This document shows positions 10,969 to 22,651 of a stretch of DNA of 64,000 nt, one piece after another. The DNA lies in the sequence record MK250027.1. One strand, written 5' to 3'. The notes under the pieces are model-generated. The model made no database searches and was not told the DNA's origin. It worked only from the letters and a program-made list of their open reading frames with translations. Positions within the stretch are counted from its first letter, which is position 1. Each line of letters starts with the position of its first letter. The translations under genes and the position numbers were made by a program.

Positions 10969-11649
10969 TTACTTCTTATATAAAATATTATCAATCATTC
11001 CTTTAGAACCATATGATTTTGCTTCTTCTGCTGTCATCCAAAAATCTCTATCTGCATCAGATTTAATTTTTTTCATTGTTTGCCCAGAATGATTTGCAAT
11101 AATATCATAAAGTTCTGTTTTTAACTTATTTATTTCTTTACATGTAATTTCTATATCACTTGCTTGGGTATGATCTCCAGTAGATGACATAGGTTGGTGA
11201 ATCATTACACGTGAATGTGGTAATGCGTATCTTTTTCCTTCAGTTCCTGCACAAAGTAATATACTAGCCATACTAGCTGCCATACCGGCACATATAGTAG
11301 ATACATCAGACCTTATAAATTGCATTGTATCATATATCTCTAATCCTGAATATACATCACCACCTGGTGAATTAATATAAATAGAAATATCAGTATTATC
11401 TACATTATCAAGATACAATAATTGAGATGTAATAATATTAGCACTTTCTGCTGTTACAGGATTACCTAAGAAAATAATTCTATCCATCATCAATCTTGAG
11501 AATACATCCATTTGTGATACGTTAAGTTGTCGTTCCTCAAGTATAGTAGGATTTTGATAACCCATATTTATACCATTCATATAATCATGTAAGTAAAGAC
11601 TACTTACATTTCTTGAATTCATAAACTTTTCAAAATCAGTTTTAATCAT
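10969..11649 (-). CDS. clpP: Clp protease proteolytic subunit (canonical, host-like)
   Basis: DVFSRLMMDRIIFLG, YINSPGG, AASMAS (Ser), MIHQP (His), DRDFWM (Asp). Confidence 0.95.
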   Translation of the reverse strand: MIKTDFEKFMNSRNVSSLYLHDYMNGINMGYQNPTILEERQLNVSQMDVFSRLMMDRIIFLGNPVTAESANIITSQLLYLDNVDNTDISIYINSPGGDVYSGLEIYDTMQFIRSDVSTICAGMAASMASILLCAGTEGKRYALPHSRVMIHQPMSSTGDHTQASDIEITCKEINKLKTELYDIIANHSGQTMKKIKSDADRDFWMTAEEAKSYGSKGMIDNILYKK

Positions 11650-12142
11650 CTATATTATAGTATTTCTTTCTAAAACATTTTTTTAGTAATGATACAACAT
11701 GAATATTAGGAAATTCACAAGGATTATTAGGATTTGTTTCATTATAAATATCGGGATAACAATCTAATATAAATTTAACAACTCCTTGAGATCTAGATAC
11801 TCCAGCTGAACAATGAACATAAATATCTTTTCCTAAATTATTCTCTATAAAATTAAATAATTCATTTGCTTGATTATCTGTTAATCCTTTAATTGAATTT
11901 GCATATTTAATTTCATCTTCTGTTATATCATCTCCATATGCATATAATAAATTATAATCTGTAATATCATAAAAGTCTAAATTAATAACATTATCTCTTG
12001 ATTTAAATATATGATATTCATCTTTTGCATTTGGTTCACATATAGATATTATTGCTATATTATCTGGTAATGTATTGTTATCCCATTTATTTTTATTCAT
12101 TAACGATTTAAATCCGTCAAATCCTGTACACCAAATTTTCAT
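11642..12142 (-). CDS. Protein-tyrosine/dual-specificity phosphatase-like protein
   Basis: CX5R P-loop VHCSAGVSRS. Confidence 0.85.
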   Translation of the reverse strand: MKIWCTGFDGFKSLMNKNKWDNNTLPDNIAIISICEPNAKDEYHIFKSRDNVINLDFYDITDYNLLYAYGDDITEDEIKYANSIKGLTDNQANELFNFIENNLGKDIYVHCSAGVSRSQGVVKFILDCYPDIYNETNPNNPCEFPNIHVVSLLKKCFRKKYYNIDD

Positions 12143-12777
12143 AATTTACTTAATTGAATTTCTAATTCATGTATATGTGATAATTCTTTATCTATCTCAT
12201 CATTTAAATAATCTATTCTATCTTGCGATTTTTTAATTAAGCGTTTAAGTTCATCTGATAATATATTATTTTCATCAAAATAATTTGAAATGATTTTTTT
12301 AATATTATCTATTCCGTTAACAAATGTTTTAAATTCATCATCTGTTAATTTAAAAGAAATTTGATTATTTAAATTATAAACATATATTTTTTCTTTTAAT
12401 GATTTACATTCTTTTAAAAAGAGTTCTATATTTTCATCTATTATAAAATCTAAATCATAATCAGTAAATTTGACAAAAGTATTAATTTCAAAATTATCAT
12501 ACTTTGGATTAATAAATACGTCGTTAAATATATAATTTACATAATAGAATAAATCAACTCCATAAATATCATGAAACGAATCTGTATGACATACTATAAA
12601 ATCTCCTAATTTCATATTAGAAAAATATCCATAATCGAAATCAAATATTTTTATTGTTCTATTTAATAAATCAATTGGTATATTATCTTTTAAAATTTTA
12701 GGAAAATCATTTTCATCAGGACATTCTAATAATTTATGAATATCCTGATATATGTTTTTTAATTTCTCATATTCCAT
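12139..12777 (-). CDS. Hypothetical protein with C-terminal coiled coil
   Basis: 212-aa ORF. Confidence 0.8.
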   Translation of the reverse strand: MEYEKLKNIYQDIHKLLECPDENDFPKILKDNIPIDLLNRTIKIFDFDYGYFSNMKLGDFIVCHTDSFHDIYGVDLFYYVNYIFNDVFINPKYDNFEINTFVKFTDYDLDFIIDENIELFLKECKSLKEKIYVYNLNNQISFKLTDDEFKTFVNGIDNIKKIISNYFDENNILSDELKRLIKKSQDRIDYLNDEIDKELSHIHELEIQLSKL

Positions 12778-12779
12778 AT

Positions 12780-13469
12780 TTAAATAAACTTTTTAATATA
12801 TTTTAATGTATCATGAATATCTTGAGAAAACTTAAACAATGCTTCCTTTGTTTTAAGATTAATATCTTTATATAGTTGTTCTTTCGTTTCAAACCCTATA
12901 GCATCATCTGATTTCATCCATGATTTCTGTATAACTGCAGTATGCCTATTACTATCATTAATAGTAATATTATCCCAATTATTACCATATATATTAATTT
13001 CTGTATATACAATAGTTACTCTATTATTAATAATATTTACATCTTCTAACATAATATAAGTATCATTAATATTATAATCAAAACCACATGGTTCTACACC
13101 ATATGTTATATCTTTATAAAAATCATTATCTACTTTTCGCATAACTTTACCAGTATCTAAATAATTATGCTGAATAAAATCACGTAATTCAATATTATAT
13201 TGAGATATAAAATTACCGCATGGACATTGTTCAGTCAAAAATATTTGCATATTATATGGTAAATATCTAAAATCTTCATTATTAACATTTAAATAACGAC
13301 GTTTTACTAATTTAAATGTATAATCAATATTATTGATATTAATAGTTACTTCTTCCTTTGCACAAAAATCTTGATATGTATGCAACTTATTTAAAAGACG
13401 TTTAAATAATGTAGCAACTCTATCACAACCTAAATCATTTACTGAAATATCATATACTTCAAAATTCAT
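12780..13469 (-). CDS. Hypothetical protein
   Basis: 229-aa ORF directly after a class I promoter. Confidence 0.8.
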   Translation of the reverse strand: MNFEVYDISVNDLGCDRVATLFKRLLNKLHTYQDFCAKEEVTININNIDYTFKLVKRRYLNVNNEDFRYLPYNMQIFLTEQCPCGNFISQYNIELRDFIQHNYLDTGKVMRKVDNDFYKDITYGVEPCGFDYNINDTYIMLEDVNIINNRVTIVYTEINIYGNNWDNITINDSNRHTAVIQKSWMKSDDAIGFETKEQLYKDINLKTKEALFKFSQDIHDTLKYIKKFI

Positions 13470-13505
13470 AGTTATATTATTTTTTAATTAAACATTCTAT
13501 TAATA

Positions 13506-13513
13506 CAAAGATA
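13506..13513 (-). promoter_or_regulatory. Class I host-type promoter TATCTTTG
   Basis: ATGTATCTTTGTA upstream of 13469. Confidence 0.8.
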
Positions 13514-13587
13514 CATAAAATTATTAAAAATAAAAAATAGTAATTAAGAAAACTAATATTAAATTTCTTAATTACTATATATTTTAA

Positions 13588-13794
13588 TTACTTTGATGAC
13601 GAGCTAGATGATGATGGAAATAATAATTTAGCAACTGTCATCAAACACAATGCATGAATATATGTAATTGTTGGTAAACCAAATAAATATGGCATAACAT
13701 AATTCCAACAAATCATAAATATAATTGCACCTAAAATAATAAATATAATTGCAACTAAAATAGTTACAATTGATGTCCATATAAAAGTTTTCAT
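13588..13794 (-). CDS. Small membrane protein
   Basis: 68 aa, two hydrophobic segments. Confidence 0.75.
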   Translation of the reverse strand: MKTFIWTSIVTILVAIIFIILGAIIFMICWNYVMPYLFGLPTITYIHALCLMTVAKLLFPSSSSSSSK

Positions 13795-13890
13795 ATAATT
13801 TATTTACTTGTAATTAATGCAAATAGAATATTTGATAATACATTAAATCTAAACTTCTTTTTTGCATATCTACCTTTATTTTTTATTTGT

Positions 13891-14115
13891 TCATACTTCA
13901 TTATTTCTATTATTATAATAATTAATCAAATCAACTTTCATTTCTTTATTAAATTGATTATTTCTTTTTCTATTTCTAATAACTCTATCTTCTGCTATTT
14001 CACAATTATAACGTTTCCATTTATTTAAAATAGAACGTCTATACTTTGGTTTAATTTTATCTTTATTATCATGCATATAATCATATACAGCTTGTTCTTT
14101 AAAATTATTACTCAT
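13891..14115 (-). CDS. Small basic hypothetical protein
   Basis: 74-aa ORF. Confidence 0.65.
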   Translation of the reverse strand: MSNNFKEQAVYDYMHDNKDKIKPKYRRSILNKWKRYNCEIAEDRVIRNRKRNNQFNKEMKVDLINYYNNRNNEV

Positions 14116-14158
14116 AGTATATTTTATAAAGATATTTTATTTTCAAAATAATAAAAAA

Positions 14159-14222
14159 TAAACATCAAAATTGTGGTTCTAAATCTTACTGCTACTTACT
14201 AAGACTACAATTTTGATGTTTA
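14159..14222 (-). terminator. Terminator closing non-coding locus 1
   Basis: 16-bp inverted repeat TAAACATCAAAATTGT/ACAATTTTGATGTTTA followed on the minus strand by TTTTTTATT. Confidence 0.7.
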
Positions 14223-14896
14223 TAAAAGCAATCATTCATTATCCTGCAGCATCCATATTAGTATAAGTTTCATTGCAATAGAACTTTACAACTATAGTGA
14301 TAATCCACTTATACATTCTTTTACTCTAAAGTCTTTTATATAACTTTATCATACATAATATATGTACTGTCCATCAATAAAAGGTTCTTTATTTCATCAT
14401 GGTTTTATATCGTATAAACAACCCTCTGTATATCACTGATTCATTTCTTTACATTTAGAAATCAGGGTCTTTAAGCCTCAACGTTTGGCTGTAACTATTA
14501 TCCTCAACCATTACCAGATAATGTCATCTTGTTTTTGTGGTGCATCTCACATACCTCCTTTAATCATAAAACAAGCAAAACTACTAAGACAAATAACGTT
14601 TCTTAGAACTTCTACGAATTTACGCTCATATCAAATCATCATCTGATATAGACACCTAAATTAAGTGAATAAAGTTTACGACTCAATATAAAATTTTATA
14701 TCTCAACCTTTATCAAAAATGATTCATTAAATTCTTTTAAGGAACTTATTTCTAATTAAATGAAGGATTCATTTAAAATAGGTTCTCCCGAAAACATGCG
14801 GTTTATCCTTACTCATTATAATTATAATAAGCGTTGTTTATAGCACTCATTAGAATTCATTATGTATTATCTAACTCTCATTTATAATATTCATAA

Positions 14897-14925
14897 TTTA
14901 TATGATATTAAAAGCAAAATGTCTA
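14897..14925 (-). promoter_or_regulatory. Class II promoter TAGACA-N17-TATAAA
   Basis: Exact spacing; second promoter for ncRNA 1. Confidence 0.5.
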
Positions 14926-14967
14926 ATATCATATTATAAATTATTTGTCTCGTTAGATATTATCAAA

Positions 14968-14981
14968 ATTTCAAAGATCTC
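14968..14981 (-). promoter_or_regulatory. rRNA-leader-type boxA antitermination motif GAGATCTTTGAAAT
   Basis: About 25 nt downstream of the class I promoter; near-identical GAGTTCTTTGAAAT heads ncRNA 2. Confidence 0.55.
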
Positions 14982-15005
14982 TTCATTGTTATTTTATTAA
15001 CAATA

Positions 15006-15013
15006 CAAAGATA
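15006..15013 (-). promoter_or_regulatory. Class I host-type promoter driving ncRNA 1
   Basis: GTGTATCTTTGTA with no ORF downstream for about 900 nt. Confidence 0.75.
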
Positions 15014-15065
15014 CACATTCTTTTTTAATAAAAAAAATATTCTAAGAAAAAATTAAAAATATTTT

Positions 15066-15866
15066 TTATCTTACAAAACATGTTGCATATCCATGTTCAA
15101 CCTTAATAAATAATACTTCACCATTTAACCACAATTTATCAAATGGCGTTTTATCACCATTTTCTTGCATATCTTTATGTTCATCAATAGCATATTTCTC
15201 AATGTCATCAATACTACCTTTATAATAATTCTTTATGTTATCAGATTCAAGATATGCAATTCGCGACTTACATTCGTCAAGAAGTTCTTCAAATACAGGA
15301 ACAGATTTATTACAAAATCTGTCATACTCATTCTGAAAATTAATATTAGATGAACAAATACCATTTGTAATAATACGAGATACATTTTCAAGTTTCTCTA
15401 GATTATCAAGGTCTACATAAAAATCATCGCATGTAATATCATTATCTTTATACATACCAATAACATGAACTTTTGCATTCCATAATTCACACCATTTATT
15501 TGCACCATCTTCTATAAGCTGTCCAAAATCATTATCATGAAAATCAAACATAATCATGAAATTTTTATCAACCTTAATATCACTAGTTTCATATGGATCA
15601 CCTTTATACTTATGACCATCATAAAGACCTGTAAGATATGAAGAACGACTTATCCTTAAAATCTCTTTCAAACAAAAATCCTTAATTTTTTTATATTCTT
15701 CATCATTTAGATTATCAGTTCCATCAAGCAAATCTAATACTGAGTCATAATATTTTTCTTCATTTTTTACATAGTCATAAGACATATCTACAAATGGCTT
15801 GCCGAACATACGAATTTCAGATTTATTCATATCTTCTTGCATCTTCTTAAGATCTATTTCTTTCAT
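15066..15866 (-). CDS. Hypothetical protein
   Basis: 266-aa ORF. Confidence 0.8.
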   Translation of the reverse strand: MKEIDLKKMQEDMNKSEIRMFGKPFVDMSYDYVKNEEKYYDSVLDLLDGTDNLNDEEYKKIKDFCLKEILRISRSSYLTGLYDGHKYKGDPYETSDIKVDKNFMIMFDFHDNDFGQLIEDGANKWCELWNAKVHVIGMYKDNDITCDDFYVDLDNLEKLENVSRIITNGICSSNINFQNEYDRFCNKSVPVFEELLDECKSRIAYLESDNIKNYYKGSIDDIEKYAIDEHKDMQENGDKTPFDKLWLNGEVLFIKVEHGYATCFVR

Positions 15867-15879
15867 ATTTCTTAATTAT

Positions 15880-16821
15880 TTACATTGTTCCATCATTAGG
15901 TTGCAAACACATAATTCCACGTTCTCGCCACATCTTAACCACTTTAGAAGAATCTTCCAATACAAACAATACATTATAATAAGGTTCAATATATTCCTTA
16001 TATAAATTATATTTACAATCTGGACCCTTTGTAAAATTCTTCAAAGGTCTCATTAACACCTTATCAACATTACCAATAAGGTTATTCTTCAACCAATCTT
16101 CTGTTGCATGTCTAATATCGTCTGTATCTTCTCTACCTGTCAATATAATGACATCCACTGATTTATCGGCAATATATGTATTAACAAGTTGGCAAAGTTG
16201 CTTACATGGTTTATCATCCCTCATGCTATCAGCAGCACCATTACCATAAAATGGCCGACCTTGAAGATTAAAACAAAGTGTAGCATCCATATCTACAAGA
16301 ATACAATTCTTCTTCGTTTCATCAAACTTCTTAAAGCTATTATATTGCTTATTATTAAGTTGTGTAGCAATAAAGTTTCTATATCGCCTATAAGTAGATT
16401 TGATAACGGATTCACCTATAGGATTAGATCTAAATGAATCTCTTCTAATACATTCCTCTACCGATACATCAAAGAAATCCTTAAATTCCAATGTATAATG
16501 ATACTCATTATGTGTCTCATTATACTTATCAATTCTATCTTGCATTTCTTTCCATCCCTTTGGATTCAGGTTCATATTATCCATAATGATATTCCAACCT
16601 TTTTCCATAGGTGATTTAAAAAATGCATCTGTCATATCTTTAATAACAGAAAGTTTCTCACGTGATTCTACCCAATACTCACCGAACATGTTTCTAAGAG
16701 AATCCCAATTAATTCTAATTCTCTCAGTTGGTTTCTCCTTTACCCAATGTTCAGCGAATGTAGACTTACCAGACGCTTGAATACCTCTTGTCAATATAAT
16801 TACCCTTTCTTTCATATTCAT
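15880..16821 (-). CDS. pseT: Polynucleotide kinase/3'-phosphatase (T4 PseT-like)
   Basis: P-loop GIQASGKST, RINWDSLR, CIRRD; HAD domain ILVDMDATL...LTGR...LEDSSKVVKMWR. Confidence 0.9.
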   Translation of the reverse strand: MNMKERVIILTRGIQASGKSTFAEHWVKEKPTERIRINWDSLRNMFGEYWVESREKLSVIKDMTDAFFKSPMEKGWNIIMDNMNLNPKGWKEMQDRIDKYNETHNEYHYTLEFKDFFDVSVEECIRRDSFRSNPIGESVIKSTYRRYRNFIATQLNNKQYNSFKKFDETKKNCILVDMDATLCFNLQGRPFYGNGAADSMRDDKPCKQLCQLVNTYIADKSVDVIILTGREDTDDIRHATEDWLKNNLIGNVDKVLMRPLKNFTKGPDCKYNLYKEYIEPYYNVLFVLEDSSKVVKMWRERGIMCLQPNDGTM

Positions 16822-16841
16822 ATTTTATTTAATTAGCAATA

Positions 16842-16849
16842 CAAAGATA
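16842..16849 (-). promoter_or_regulatory. Class I host-type promoter TATCTTTG
   Basis: ATGTATCTTTGTA upstream of pseT. Confidence 0.8.
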
Positions 16850-16991
16850 CATAATTTTTAGGAAAATAAAAAATTAATTATTATCAAATACTATATTTTC
16901 AACAAAATTAAGTTTCTTATAATTTCTATTCTTTGAATACTTATCGATTATTTTTAAAAAATCGACCATAAATCTATAATCAAATTCTGGT

Positions 16992-17210
16992 TTATTCATC
17001 TTTTAACATCATTGCAAGAATAACAGATTTCATACATGTCATATATCCTTTAAGATACATATCTTTCAACATCAACCAAATTCTTTCAAATTCATCTGGT
17101 ATCTTTTCACTTGTATCATCAGATATATTAGAGTTACCGACAATAGTTTTAAGCTCTCGCCGTGCTTGATAATCAGCCATTGCATTTAATTTATTCTTAT
17201 TAAATTCCAT
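16992..17210 (-). CDS. Hypothetical protein
   Basis: 72-aa ORF. Confidence 0.7.
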   Translation of the reverse strand: MEFNKNKLNAMADYQARRELKTIVGNSNISDDTSEKIPDEFERIWLMLKDMYLKGYMTCMKSVILAMMLKDE

Positions 17211-17213
17211 ATT

Positions 17214-17903
17214 TTATTTAGATTTTAATCCTAAACAATATTCTTTATTAATATTATCAATAAAAGAATTAATTCTAATTCTTAGTAATTCTGATTCTTC
17301 TTCAAATTCCTTAATTTTATCAATGTCTTTTTTAATATCATCTATATTATGATTTAACAAATATTCATACGTATTAGGTTTAGATACTTTAAAATAATAA
17401 ATATCTTCATTCATAATATTATTATGATTTAAAGCACATAATAAATGATAAGATTCCTCATTTGCAGATGAACCATGATAACCATATCCATCACTTTCAA
17501 AATATATACATAATGGTCCATAACTATAATGTCCACCTGGATATACAGTTGTTCTTAATGAGTTAATATGAAATGATTTACATATATTATATTTCTTATC
17601 TAAATAATCATTCAATAACTTATTAATACTCATCATTTGAAGATCTAATAATCTATCTAAATTTATATCATTATTCTTACTTATATATACACTGGAAACT
17701 TCTTTTACAACTGAATCAATATCTAATTCATAATTCTCGTCTGTATATAAATGAAGAATACAAAGAAATAATCTATGTATATATTCTTTCTTATCGTAAT
17801 TTATATATGCAGTTTTTAATTTTTCTACATAATCATCTGTCACCTTCTTATTGATGTTATATTCGATATTCTTTATAAATTCTTTTTGCTCATTCTATGT
17901 CAT
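17214..17903 (-). CDS. Hypothetical protein, 229 aa (TAG at codon 3)
   Basis: ATG ACA TAG AAT GAG... is in frame with track ORF 17214..17843, which lacks an ATG start. Confidence 0.7.
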
Positions 17904-19510: not shown

Positions 19511-20575
19511 ACAAACACTTTATTCTAAATTTATTATATTTACATCTTATTTAAAGATGTCCCTCATGTTGTTATTCGTACGAACATAAGTTTCTGCCTC
19601 TTATGATTCACTTTAACGTTTGCCCGTTATATAATGAATGTTCATACTGAACTTCGTTATGTCCATAAGGACAAATGGCTGAGAACTTGACCAACACCTA
19701 CTCTCAATGCTGTAACGTTGGAGTTACATGTTCACACAACTCTTATTTCTAAGAGGTTGAGAGCATACCCACGACTTTTGTAAAAAATCGTAAACTCTTA
19801 CTTGATAGGTTTCATAGAAATTCATTTCATACCAACTTCCTTGGAAGGATTCAATGTGTCCCCACATTTAGCACGATACTACTCTTACTATTCTCATGTC
19901 TTTCCTTGCGGTACTCGAATCATGTCTACATATTACAGTAGAATAAGGGTATTTTAACCACCAAGTGTCGCACACTTTTGCTTATACATAATTATATGTT
20001 AAATAAAATAATTTCCAATATTATTATTCTTATTATATATTCTTTAGACTTGAAAGACGAGGTGCGACCAATAGCATTTCTTCCTTTTGAGAAGAACCCA
20101 CTAAATCGCCTTTCTGAAATTTCGTTACACCAATGTAACCATATTTCTACTCTTATAACTTACCTATTGTTTTTCAATAGTAATCTTACCATTTCTGAAC
20201 AAGTTACCAGCTTGTATAAATTATTTGGTTTATAATTTATATAAGATTCATTATAACAATTAATATTAGCACTGGGAATTGGTATTCCGATCACTAAATA
20301 TCCATAAACTTAAACTTCTATTGTATTACTACTCACATCAGTTGTCTATCAAACTTCCAATGTATATAAACTTCATCTCAGGAATTATCCCATCAATTTC
20401 CCATTTATACAGGCACTTACTAAGTTTGGTTTTCTGTAGAATGCTCATTATTCATAAACATCGATAAACATGTCTACTGTTTACCTTTATCACATCACTG
20501 CTTTATCCTTACCCCACCGAAACCATGGGTTTATATTTCAAAGAACTCATCTTGAATAAAATAAATTCATTCAAA
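19478..20575 (-). ncRNA. Candidate large ornate ncRNA 2 (about 1.05-1.1 kb, GOLLD/ROOL-class or new)
   Basis: All three minus frames are closed by TAA/TGA within 20281-20340. Clearly raised GC. Hairpins CC-GCAA-GG, GTCC-TTAT-GGAC, GTAAC-TCCAAC-GTTAC, GTTACA-TTGG-TGTAAC, TCTAC/GTAGA. Tandem promoters, boxA and terminator. Confidence 0.7.
20535..20548 (-). promoter_or_regulatory. boxA-like motif GAGTTCTTTGAAAT
   Basis: At the 5' end of ncRNA 2; matches the motif at 14968-14981. Confidence 0.55.
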
Positions 20576-20585
20576 TTTTATACTT

Positions 20586-20614
20586 ATTATATAATCAATA
20601 ATTTAAAAAGTCTA
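20586..20614 (-). promoter_or_regulatory. Class II promoter TAGACT-N17-TATAAT (proximal promoter of ncRNA 2)
   Basis: Perfect consensus with a 17-nt spacer. Confidence 0.7.
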
Positions 20615-20701
20615 TATTTTAATAGATATATTTCAAAATTTTTATTGTTAACTGTTATTAAAAATATTAAATATTAAAATCTTTTTAAACTTGATTCTAA
20701 A

Positions 20702-20730
20702 TTTATATATTAAATTAAATAGAAAGTCTA
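20702..20730 (-). promoter_or_regulatory. Class II promoter TAGACT-N17-TATAAA (distal promoter of ncRNA 2)
   Basis: 17-nt spacer; tandem with 20586-20614. Confidence 0.55.
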
Positions 20731-20756
20731 TATTTCAATACAATATTTTTAAAAAA

Positions 20757-20933
20757 TTATTTTAAACAATATTCTAAATCAAATATAAAGTCTCCTAATA
20801 GTTCAATCTTTTTCCTAATAAGTTCTGATTCTAAATCAAATTTATGATCTATACAAAAATTTAATTCAATATATAACTTATCTCTATTAGATTTCCATTT
20901 ATCTATTAATTCTTTCTTTGTTAATTTTTCCAT
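20757..20933 (-). CDS. Small hypothetical protein, 58 aa (absent from track)
   Basis: MEKLTKKELIDKWKSNRDKL...LEYCLK-TAA, directly after the upstream stop. Confidence 0.6.
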   Translation of the reverse strand: MEKLTKKELIDKWKSNRDKLYIELNFCIDHKFDLESELIRKKIELLGDFIFDLEYCLK

Positions 20934-20934
20934 C

Positions 20935-21926: not shown

Positions 21927-21950
21927 TTTTCTATATTATTTAAAATAAAA

Positions 21951-22157
21951 TTAAACTTTTAAATTAACTAAATCTTTATACTTTATTTCTTTATACTTTG
22001 TTTTATTAATAGATATAAAAATAGGCTTATCAGTATAACTTTTATAATAATTTAACGATTCGTCTTTACTAATAAACCACTTTGTTTCTTTATCTAAAAT
22101 TTTTCCAGATAAACTTCTTCCTAATCCTATCCGAATAATAATATTATTTTTCAACAT
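21951..22157 (-). CDS. Hypothetical protein
   Basis: 68-aa ORF. Confidence 0.6.
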   Translation of the reverse strand: MLKNNIIIRIGLGRSLSGKILDKETKWFISKDESLNYYKSYTDKPIFISINKTKYKEIKYKDLVNLKV

Positions 22158-22199
22158 AATTAAAAATAATTTTTCAAAAAGAAATTTATAAATTAATTA

Positions 22200-22633
22200 N
22201 NNNNNNNNNNNNNNNNNNNNNNNNNNNNNNNNNNNNNNNNNNNNNNNNNNNNNNNNNNNNNNNNNNNNNNNNNNNNNNNNNNNNNNNNNNNNNNNNNNNN
22301 NNNNNNNNNNNNNNNNNNNNNNNNNNNNNNNNNNNNNNNNNNNNNNNNNNNNNNNNNNNNNNNNNNNNNNNNNNNNNNNNNNNNNNNNNNNNNNNNNNNN
22401 NNNNNNNNNNNNNNNNNNNNNNNNNNNNNNNNNNNNNNNNNNNNNNNNNNNNNNNNNNNNNNNNNNNNNNNNNNNNNNNNNNNNNNNNNNNNNNNNNNNN
22501 NNNNNNNNNNNNNNNNNNNNNNNNNNNNNNNNNNNNNNNNNNNNNNNNNNNNNNNNNNNNNNNNNNNNNNNNNNNNNNNNNNNNNNNNNNNNNNNNNNNN
22601 NNNNNNNNNNNNNNNNNNNNNNNNNNNNNNNNN
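22200..22633. other. Assembly gap
   Basis: 434 N. Confidence 1.
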
Positions 22634-22651
22634 TTTATAATTTGTTGTAAA

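Follow-up and report, generated by a model that had tools for sequence, protein, structure and literature searches.

Large ornate RNAs, among them GOLLD, ROOL and OLE, are a rare type whose functions are mostly unknown, and recent work has shown that they can form unexpected assemblies, either of RNA alone or as RNPs. ROOL (RF03087) and GOLLD (RF01998), which by kind and not by homology are the nearest analogues of the locus described here, are large (about 0.6-0.8 kb), multi-domain RNAs of unknown function with a conserved core and expandable peripheral hairpins, and they are often carried by phages or prophages. GOLLD is associated with tRNAs. The OLE and raiA RNAs are abundant and highly structured as well and are encoded on the chromosomes of Firmicutes and Actinobacteria; small proteins serve OLE as dedicated partners. 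A different kind of precedent is offered by the boxA of rRNA operon leaders and the nut site of phage lambda.

The Lak phages are megaphages of roughly 550 kb in which TAG is read as glutamine (PMC6784885), and the papers on them note large, highly expressed intergenic regions without describing them further (10.1101/356790; PMC6784885). We find that one intergenic region, located in the 64-kb stretch of Lak DNA that we analysed (the window), is very likely the gene for a large structured non-coding RNA, about 0.85 kb long, in which a core of about 0.7 kb is conserved. The RNA resembles ROOL and GOLLD in its size, its ornate multi-domain core, its expandable hairpins, its phage-borne setting and its unknown function. 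Unlike them, it resides in a Bacteroidota phage, its leader carries an rrn-type boxA, no sequence or structure homology to either was detected by Rfam at E = 10, and no tRNA genes lie nearby, as ARAGORN reported neither tRNA nor tmRNA in the window or at six orthologous loci. It is like OLE and raiA in being structured and apparently abundant, whereas those two are chromosomal, and no homology to them was found. As in an rRNA leader or lambda nut, the boxA word of the Bacteroidia 16S leader lies about 25 nt after the inferred start of a long untranslated transcript, but no rRNA similarity follows it and neither boxB nor boxC was identified.

The largest ORF-free gap of the window

The window comes from a Prevotella Lak-B megaphage; the 4 kb round the gap show 100% identity with Lak-B7/B8, falling to about 80% with Lak-A and Lak-C. 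Of the nine Lak-B genomes, five (B1/B3/B5/B6/B9) have about 575 extra bases within the equivalent of 13000..17000, so that the match spans 4575 rather than 4001 bases in two pieces; the RNA is contiguous in these genomes and the extra bases lie outside it.

At 950 nt (15065..14116), the gap is the largest ORF-free gap in the window. As the local genes are on the minus strand, the RNA element is to be read on that strand, and its parts and neighbours are as follows.

15866-15066, minus: upstream ORF of 266 aa, adjoining the gap
15006..15037, minus: host-type (Bacteroidota-like) promoter, with a T-run at 15037..15030 (about -33) and the -7 box TATCTTTG at 15013..15006
14968..14979, minus: boxA-like word GATCTTTGAAAT of the rRNA-leader type, GTTCTTTGAAAT in most lineages
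14866..14967, minus: variable AU-rich leader, a long hairpin in the single-sequence MFE fold
about 14725..14865, minus: core domain 1 (helices 1-8), with closing helix 14859-14852 / 14735-14728 and four inner helices
14616..14721, minus: core domain 2 (helices 9-14), in which helix 14714-14708 / 14674-14668 bears the variable hairpin 14702..14685
14523..14615, minus: core domain 3, with hairpin CTAAGA/TCTTAG at 14606-14584 and a long hairpin at 14581-14523 that holds an inner hairpin at 14558-14539
14246..14522, minus: core domain 4 (helices 15 and 19-29)
14153..14223, minus: intrinsic-terminator-like element (helices 31-32), a 16+8-pair AU-rich hairpin at 14223-14158 with a U-run at 14158-14153
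14115-13891, minus: downstream ORF of 74 aa, adjoining the gap

The gap holds no ORF under code 11 or code 15, and its longest stop-to-stop frames under code 15 are 44 aa in the sense and 68 aa in the antisense direction. The neighbouring ORFs from 10969 to 17210 contain no in-frame TAG. No family match was obtained for the 266-aa upstream ORF.

Conservation without coding capacity

Orthologous loci were gathered from contigs carrying homologues of the upstream protein and by scanning viral and metagenome contigs with an invariant 18-mer, which yielded 21 non-identical copies from at least 12 samples. The order Pnkp, 266-aa gene, gap without a called gene and ORF of 73-80 aa is common to all 21, and the gap keeps its place and its size (925-1040 nt) in at least 12 Lak lineages. 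Among lineages the gap and core are 79-94% identical, and the upstream protein is 36-88% identical. Between Lak-B and Lak-A, nucleotide identity is 83% in the RNA core, 67% in the leader, 78% in Pnkp, 60% in the upstream gene (38% at the amino acid level) and 89% in the downstream ORF. As the core is more conserved than both the upstream gene and Pnkp, it evolves like a well-conserved gene.

This conservation is not that of a protein. The variable columns are spread over the three positions modulo 3 as 54/61/63 (p = 0.69), showing no codon periodicity, and between any pair of lineages 5-14 indels that are not multiples of three fall within the conserved core, breaking every frame. The possibility that the region encodes a protein by an unrecognised decoding rule, or small peptides, could be raised as Lak phages recode TAG (PMC6784885) and as a GGAGG word followed by an ATG occurs at 14557-14548. 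It is practically ruled out by the absence of a long code-15 frame, by the missing periodicity and by the many frame-breaking indels, and the ATG after GGAGG meets TGA at once in the B clade and opens a frame of only 5 codons in the A clade.

By nhmmer and by a covariance model of the most conserved sub-domain (CM R1, see below), each phage has one copy of the RNA, and its site is the same in all lineages. No paralogue was found in the window, in the nearest record (249 kb) or in the side loci; CM R1 gives a single match each in the window and in the 249-kb record. The region contains no detectable tandem repeats or iterons.

Two ENA scaffolds of about 168 kb (L146/L147) encode, in a different context, a protein that shares 90% identity with the product of the 266-aa gene in Lak-A, without Pnkp before it, with an IMPDH-like gene after it and with no RNA beside it. 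A third clade, represented by L164, has a homologue of the upstream gene at 35% identity, also without the gap beside it. In both cases only the adjacent locus could be seen, and these may be rearranged or smaller relatives. As the upstream gene is full length in them without an adjoining RNA, it is a complete gene and not an exon.

This observation bears on the idea that the region is a self-splicing intron or another mobile ribozyme located between or within genes. ORF-less introns of groups I and II reach a similar size and have multi-domain folds as well, and Lak phages are known for unusual tRNA introns (PMC6784885). Yet no intron family of Rfam matches even at E = 10, the element has its own promoter and terminator, the upstream protein is full length in L146 and L164, which lack the RNA at that place, the element is single copy at one site in all lineages and no RNA contig contains a joint across the region. 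We regard this explanation as all but eliminated.

A fold supported by compensatory changes on one strand

A consensus fold was computed with RNAalifold from a 16-sequence alignment of the core (A3). It comprises 206 pairs in 32 helices, and 98.4% of the alignment cells hold canonical pairs. Both sides have changed in 36 pairs, compared with 15.3 +/- 1.9 in shuffled alignments, none of which (0/500) reached 36, and when the partners were slid by 1-3 columns only 3-8 pairs were changed on both sides; the covariation score was 0.137 versus 0.02-0.03. G.U pairs make up 11.6% of the cells, and the same pairs read on the opposite strand are only 87% standard. The RNA strand deduced from the canonical and G.U pairs agrees with the strand of the promoter, the boxA and the U-run.

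The sequences fall mainly into two clades, and for this reason part of the covariation represents a single clade-level event. Several compensations are independent of the A/B split and occurred in single lineages, namely G-C to U-A in helix 5 of L142, two pairs in helix 8 of L166, compensations in helix 29 of L163 and helix 16 of L140, and one pair of helix 28 that changed in two independent events, in L138 and L139 (A-U to U-A and A-U to C-G). Many helices remain untested since most core columns are invariant, and competing pairings were seen between runs within domain 1 and between the leader and domain 1. Two earlier RNAalifold solutions were discarded: in the first, promoter bases that precede the start were joined to the core, which we consider an artefact, and the second broke helix 14314-14307 / 14268-14261, which is supported by two independent compensations.

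In domain 1, double-sided changes occur in helices 2, 4, 5 and 8. Domain 2 continues after its variable hairpin with a conserved hairpin at 14667-14653 followed by a variable region. Domain 3 comprises helices 16-18, with double-sided changes in helices 16 and 17; its stem CTAAGA/TCTTAG (14606-14601 / 14589-14584) is kept through C-G to G-C and U-A to C-G replacements, and the stem CTTGTTT/AAACAAG (14575-14569 / 14534-14528) through C-G to U-A. Domain 4 contains the most conserved sub-domain of the RNA (14521-14394, covariance model R1, 158.6 bits), followed by a variable hairpin at 14391-14327 and by helix 14314-14307 / 14268-14261, which encloses the hairpin 14292-14272; double-sided changes occur in its helices 20, 25, 26, 27, 28 and 29. 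A long-range closure pairs GUAG (14615-14612) with CUGC (14249-14246). The hairpin of the terminator-like element has 24 pairs, 11 of them changed on both sides, with a conserved loop word GUAAGUAGCAG, and ends in UUUUUU at 14158-14153. A simple consensus terminator scan misses this hairpin because its criteria demand 3 G-C pairs and a loop no longer than 8.

Three peripheral hairpins in total are expandable. The hairpin 14702-14685 takes inserts of 48-85 nt in L139, L140 and L166, and the relative detected in RNA libraries (see below) has an 83-nt insert at 14683/14702. In L140 the equivalent hairpin holds an 81-nt tRNA-like cloverleaf (L140:2810-2890) with the T-arm word GGTTCGAGTCC; it is sub-threshold, being reported by ARAGORN only at a relaxed threshold, and this weak insert recalls the association of GOLLD with tRNAs. 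A different insert of about 50-65 nt occupies the site of the cloverleaf in L139 and L166. The leader varies in sequence and length between clades, and in some lineages it is about 110 nt longer; the extra, GC-richer bases, found in an A-type sub-clade (L158:5479-5787, L159:712-1009, L161:7692-7987), lie between boxA and core.

An element acting at the level of DNA, for instance a replication origin primed by transcription or a site of packaging or recombination, would be conserved through the binding of proteins to DNA. The region is AT-rich, its location is conserved and a strong promoter lies beside it, and some phage origins are likewise AT-rich and beside a strong promoter. Against this, the conservation takes the form of compensated pairs, many of them G.U, that fit one strand only, there are no iterons or tandem repeats, the cumulative GC skew shows no turn here and the product is present in RNA libraries. 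There is hardly any room left for such an element as the explanation.

Promoter, boxA and terminator on the same strand

The Bacteroides -7 promoter consensus is TAnnTTTG. The word TATCTTTG at 15013-15006 matches it and is shared with 8 mRNA promoters in the window, and at the -33 position the T-run is found at the right distance but without TTTG. A longer word enclosing it, TGTATCTTTG, has 9 copies in the window, on the minus strand in every case, and each copy has a T-run about 17-20 nt upstream. The copies found by the window scan are located at the following positions.

45976, 42242, 38155, 28393, 25894, 16851, 15015, 13515 and 8796, minus: copies of TGTATCTTTG

In the other 8 copies an ATG lies 25-45 nt downstream, whereas none follows the copy in the gap. 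A block of roughly 55 nt around the promoter is present at least 15 times in the nearest record (G001); it is the sole part of the region that is repeated elsewhere in the genome, the RNA body being single copy, and the promoter is invariant across all lineages aligned. From its location we infer a transcription start near 15000, which has not been mapped. The restriction of the TGTATCTTTG promoters to one strand, together with the TAG-free genes of 10969-17210, would fit an early region transcribed by the host polymerase.

The word G[A/T]TCTTTGAAAT at 14979-14968 fits the rrn-type boxA consensus and is placed early in an untranslated transcript. Its core, TCTTTGAAA, is invariant in 14 lineages, and the 16S leader of a Bacteroidia genome has a matching CGTTCTTTGAAAA 133 nt before the 16S 5' end. 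The word is missing from all 8 TGTATCTTTG mRNA leaders. With 5 matches in the window against 1.4 expected, and 5 being reached in 3/100 shuffles, the word by itself is not statistically unusual there.

These data bear out most of what a sequence-only reading of the window had claimed. It had noted a class I promoter box (15013-15006) that precedes ATGs elsewhere and not here, a boxA, about 800 nt without an ORF, the stems CTAAGA/TCTTAG and CTTGTTT/AAACAAG and a closing hairpin with a U-tract. All of these held: the boxA was checked against the Bacteroidia 16S leader, the stretch without an ORF under code 11 or 15 is about 850 nt, the two stems are kept by compensatory change and the closing hairpin (14223-14158) has its double-sided pairs and its U-run. 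The raised GC that it reported is only marginal, the core having 27.9%, the window 25.5% and the leader 17%. Its GGGA tetraloop hairpin cannot be judged as the site is an invariant stretch, where RNAalifold pairs GGG/CCU instead. It had also proposed comparing the fold with shuffled controls; the single-sequence MFE gave a modest z-score of -2.49, and 0/20 shuffles folded as well.

Presence in RNA libraries

In four animal-gut RNA-seq runs of one study, assembled contigs of a roughly 92% identical relative cover 14240-14946. We compared the RNA contigs over 5 kb (12500-17500) at 80% likeness, and elsewhere in these 5 kb there were only two short pieces of 39-53 nt. One contig is 770 nt in length, and the X1 contig reaches about 14946. 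No contig of the four runs was found on Pnkp, the 266-aa gene or the downstream ORFs, although the flanks of the relative may be too divergent to be seen at 80% likeness. Carried-over DNA would cover the flanks too; the confinement of the signal to this stretch therefore points to a transcript in large excess over its neighbours. The evidence consists of assembled contigs, for which neither strand nor ends nor level is given. Two of the contigs break off at 14244-14234, between the last core helix and the hairpin of the terminator; the 3' end of the mature RNA may therefore lie elsewhere than the site of termination, possibly owing to trimming. The expression agrees with our view that the locus is one of the 'large, highly expressed intergenic regions' of Lak phages (Devoto et al. 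2019), to which it gives a concrete identity.

A further alternative is that the region is a very long cis-acting leader, similar to an attenuator or a riboswitch, that controls read-through into the 74-aa ORF and the small genes following it. In its favour, the U-run is followed 38 nt later by the start of this ORF, which adjoins the RNA at every locus, and no TGTATCTTTG promoter lies between the terminator and the ORF, the next copy being at 13515. However, no RNA contig reaches the terminator or covers any of the downstream ORFs, the long hairpin of the terminator has 11 compensated pairs and no competing antiterminator is visible, and the Rfam searches gave no riboswitch or T-box match. 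To our knowledge no leader approaches the size of the 700-nt four-domain core. We therefore consider this explanation very improbable.

The inference of the sequence-only reading, that the region encodes a structured non-coding RNA and is not a spacer, is thus supported by the conservation, by the covariation and by the promoter, boxA and terminator on one strand. Its attributes 'early' and 'stable' are still inferences, resting on the host-type promoter, on neighbours without in-frame TAG and on RNA contigs over this stretch only. It had named a conserved code-15 ORF spanning the region and the lack of a discrete transcript as results that would refute it. Neither applies: there is no long frame and no 3-periodicity, with 5-14 frame-breaking indels per pair, and the RNA-library signal is confined to the stretch, within the limits of the contig data.

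An RNA family without described relatives

No family of Rfam 15 matched anywhere in the 64-kb window at the gathering threshold. When the region was searched with E up to 10 only chance-level snoRNA and miRNA matches appeared, and five orthologous loci searched with E up to 5 gave nothing. The unmatched families include GOLLD, ROOL, OLE, HEARO, RNase P, tmRNA, 6S, group I/II introns and riboswitches. No description of this RNA was found in the literature searched, and the Lak papers, as far as searched, contain no coordinates, family definition, structure, promoter/boxA/terminator anatomy or comparative analysis for the region. As far as Rfam and this literature reach, the RNA represents a new family that is specific to Lak megaphages of Prevotella and matches no described RNA family.

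An exact 18-mer scan of bacterial and archaeal species genomes gave 12 matches, all of which were chance by CM R1, and a 14-mer scan of viral contigs gave mostly chance matches. CM R1 found no copy in 151 sampled Bacteroidia genomes, but the filters were strict and Prevotella was not targeted, so absence is unproven.

Proposed mechanism and possible functions

Based on these data we propose that the host RNA polymerase would start at the Bacteroidota-type promoter near 15000 and transcribe the boxA word about 25 nt after the start. The boxA would probably recruit antitermination factors of the NusB/S10 type, as in rRNA operons, although we have no binding data and the dependence on Nus factors is inferred; with such factors on the boxA, the long untranslated transcript would not be cut short by Rho. 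Transcription would end at the long hairpin and U-run near 14153, and the RNA is predicted to form four conserved domains of several helices each, with a few hairpins at the periphery that can expand, to accumulate to a high level and to act as RNA. Its action in trans, like its early timing and its stability, is an inference. If the inferred role of the rrn-type boxA is correct, megaphages would borrow the host rRNA antitermination system for their own non-coding RNAs.

What the RNA does can only be guessed. It is possible, and we say so with little confidence as neither a function nor a partner has been shown, that it is a scaffold or protein-binding RNA, either in an RNP with the 74-aa protein or a host factor or in an RNA-only assembly of the ROOL/GOLLD type. 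According to a bolder reading, which we think unlikely, it would be the RNA subunit of a Lak-specific particle, formed with the 74-aa protein or as a ROOL/GOLLD-like RNA-only multimer, that is made early under rRNA-style antitermination and takes over or shields part of the RNA or translation machinery of the host before the switch to the TAG-recoded late genes. Were this reading true, the second boxA-headed RNA described below (20546-20239) would make a set of rRNA-style phage RNA genes.

Whichever function applies, a new and unrelated family of such size, conserved across many hosts, is carried by the largest phages that inhabit the guts of humans and animals, and its RNA is apparently among the most abundant phage transcripts. 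It provides a fresh and tractable example of a large ornate RNA, since its gene is defined (promoter, boxA, core and terminator), natural variants show which hairpins are dispensable and there is a candidate for a partner protein.

The 74-aa ORF and a second boxA-headed region

The 74-aa ORF (13891..14115) encodes a basic protein and lies directly downstream of the RNA in all loci. Its conservation is 73-100%, with amino acid identities of 77-93% between lineages, and between Lak-B and Lak-A its product is 87% identical at the amino acid level, compared with 38% for the upstream 266-aa gene. In the databases searched its homologues are restricted to Lak phages, there is no Pfam or PHROG match, and atlas and family searches gave no lead; the AF2 model consists of one short and one long helix (pLDDT 73). 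The protein could be a partner of the RNA, by analogy with the small partner proteins of OLE, or the ORF could be a read-through gene. The idea of a partnership rests on adjacency only, and the ORF has not been shown to be part of the element.

A masked stretch or assembly gap is present elsewhere in the window, where 21927..22651 includes 434 N.

The boxA word recurs at the head of a second conserved region without an ORF, 20546..20239 on the minus strand, within the ORF-free gap 20236-20934. This region starts with the boxA word GTTCTTTGAAAT at 20546-20535, and two copies of ATATAGACTTT, rather than a TGTATCTTTG promoter, lie upstream of it. It has no Rfam match. The boxA is followed by a GC-richer stretch, and over about 340-430 nt Lak-B is 84-87% identical to Lak-A/C. 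We consider it likely that 20546..20239 is another non-coding RNA of the Lak phages.
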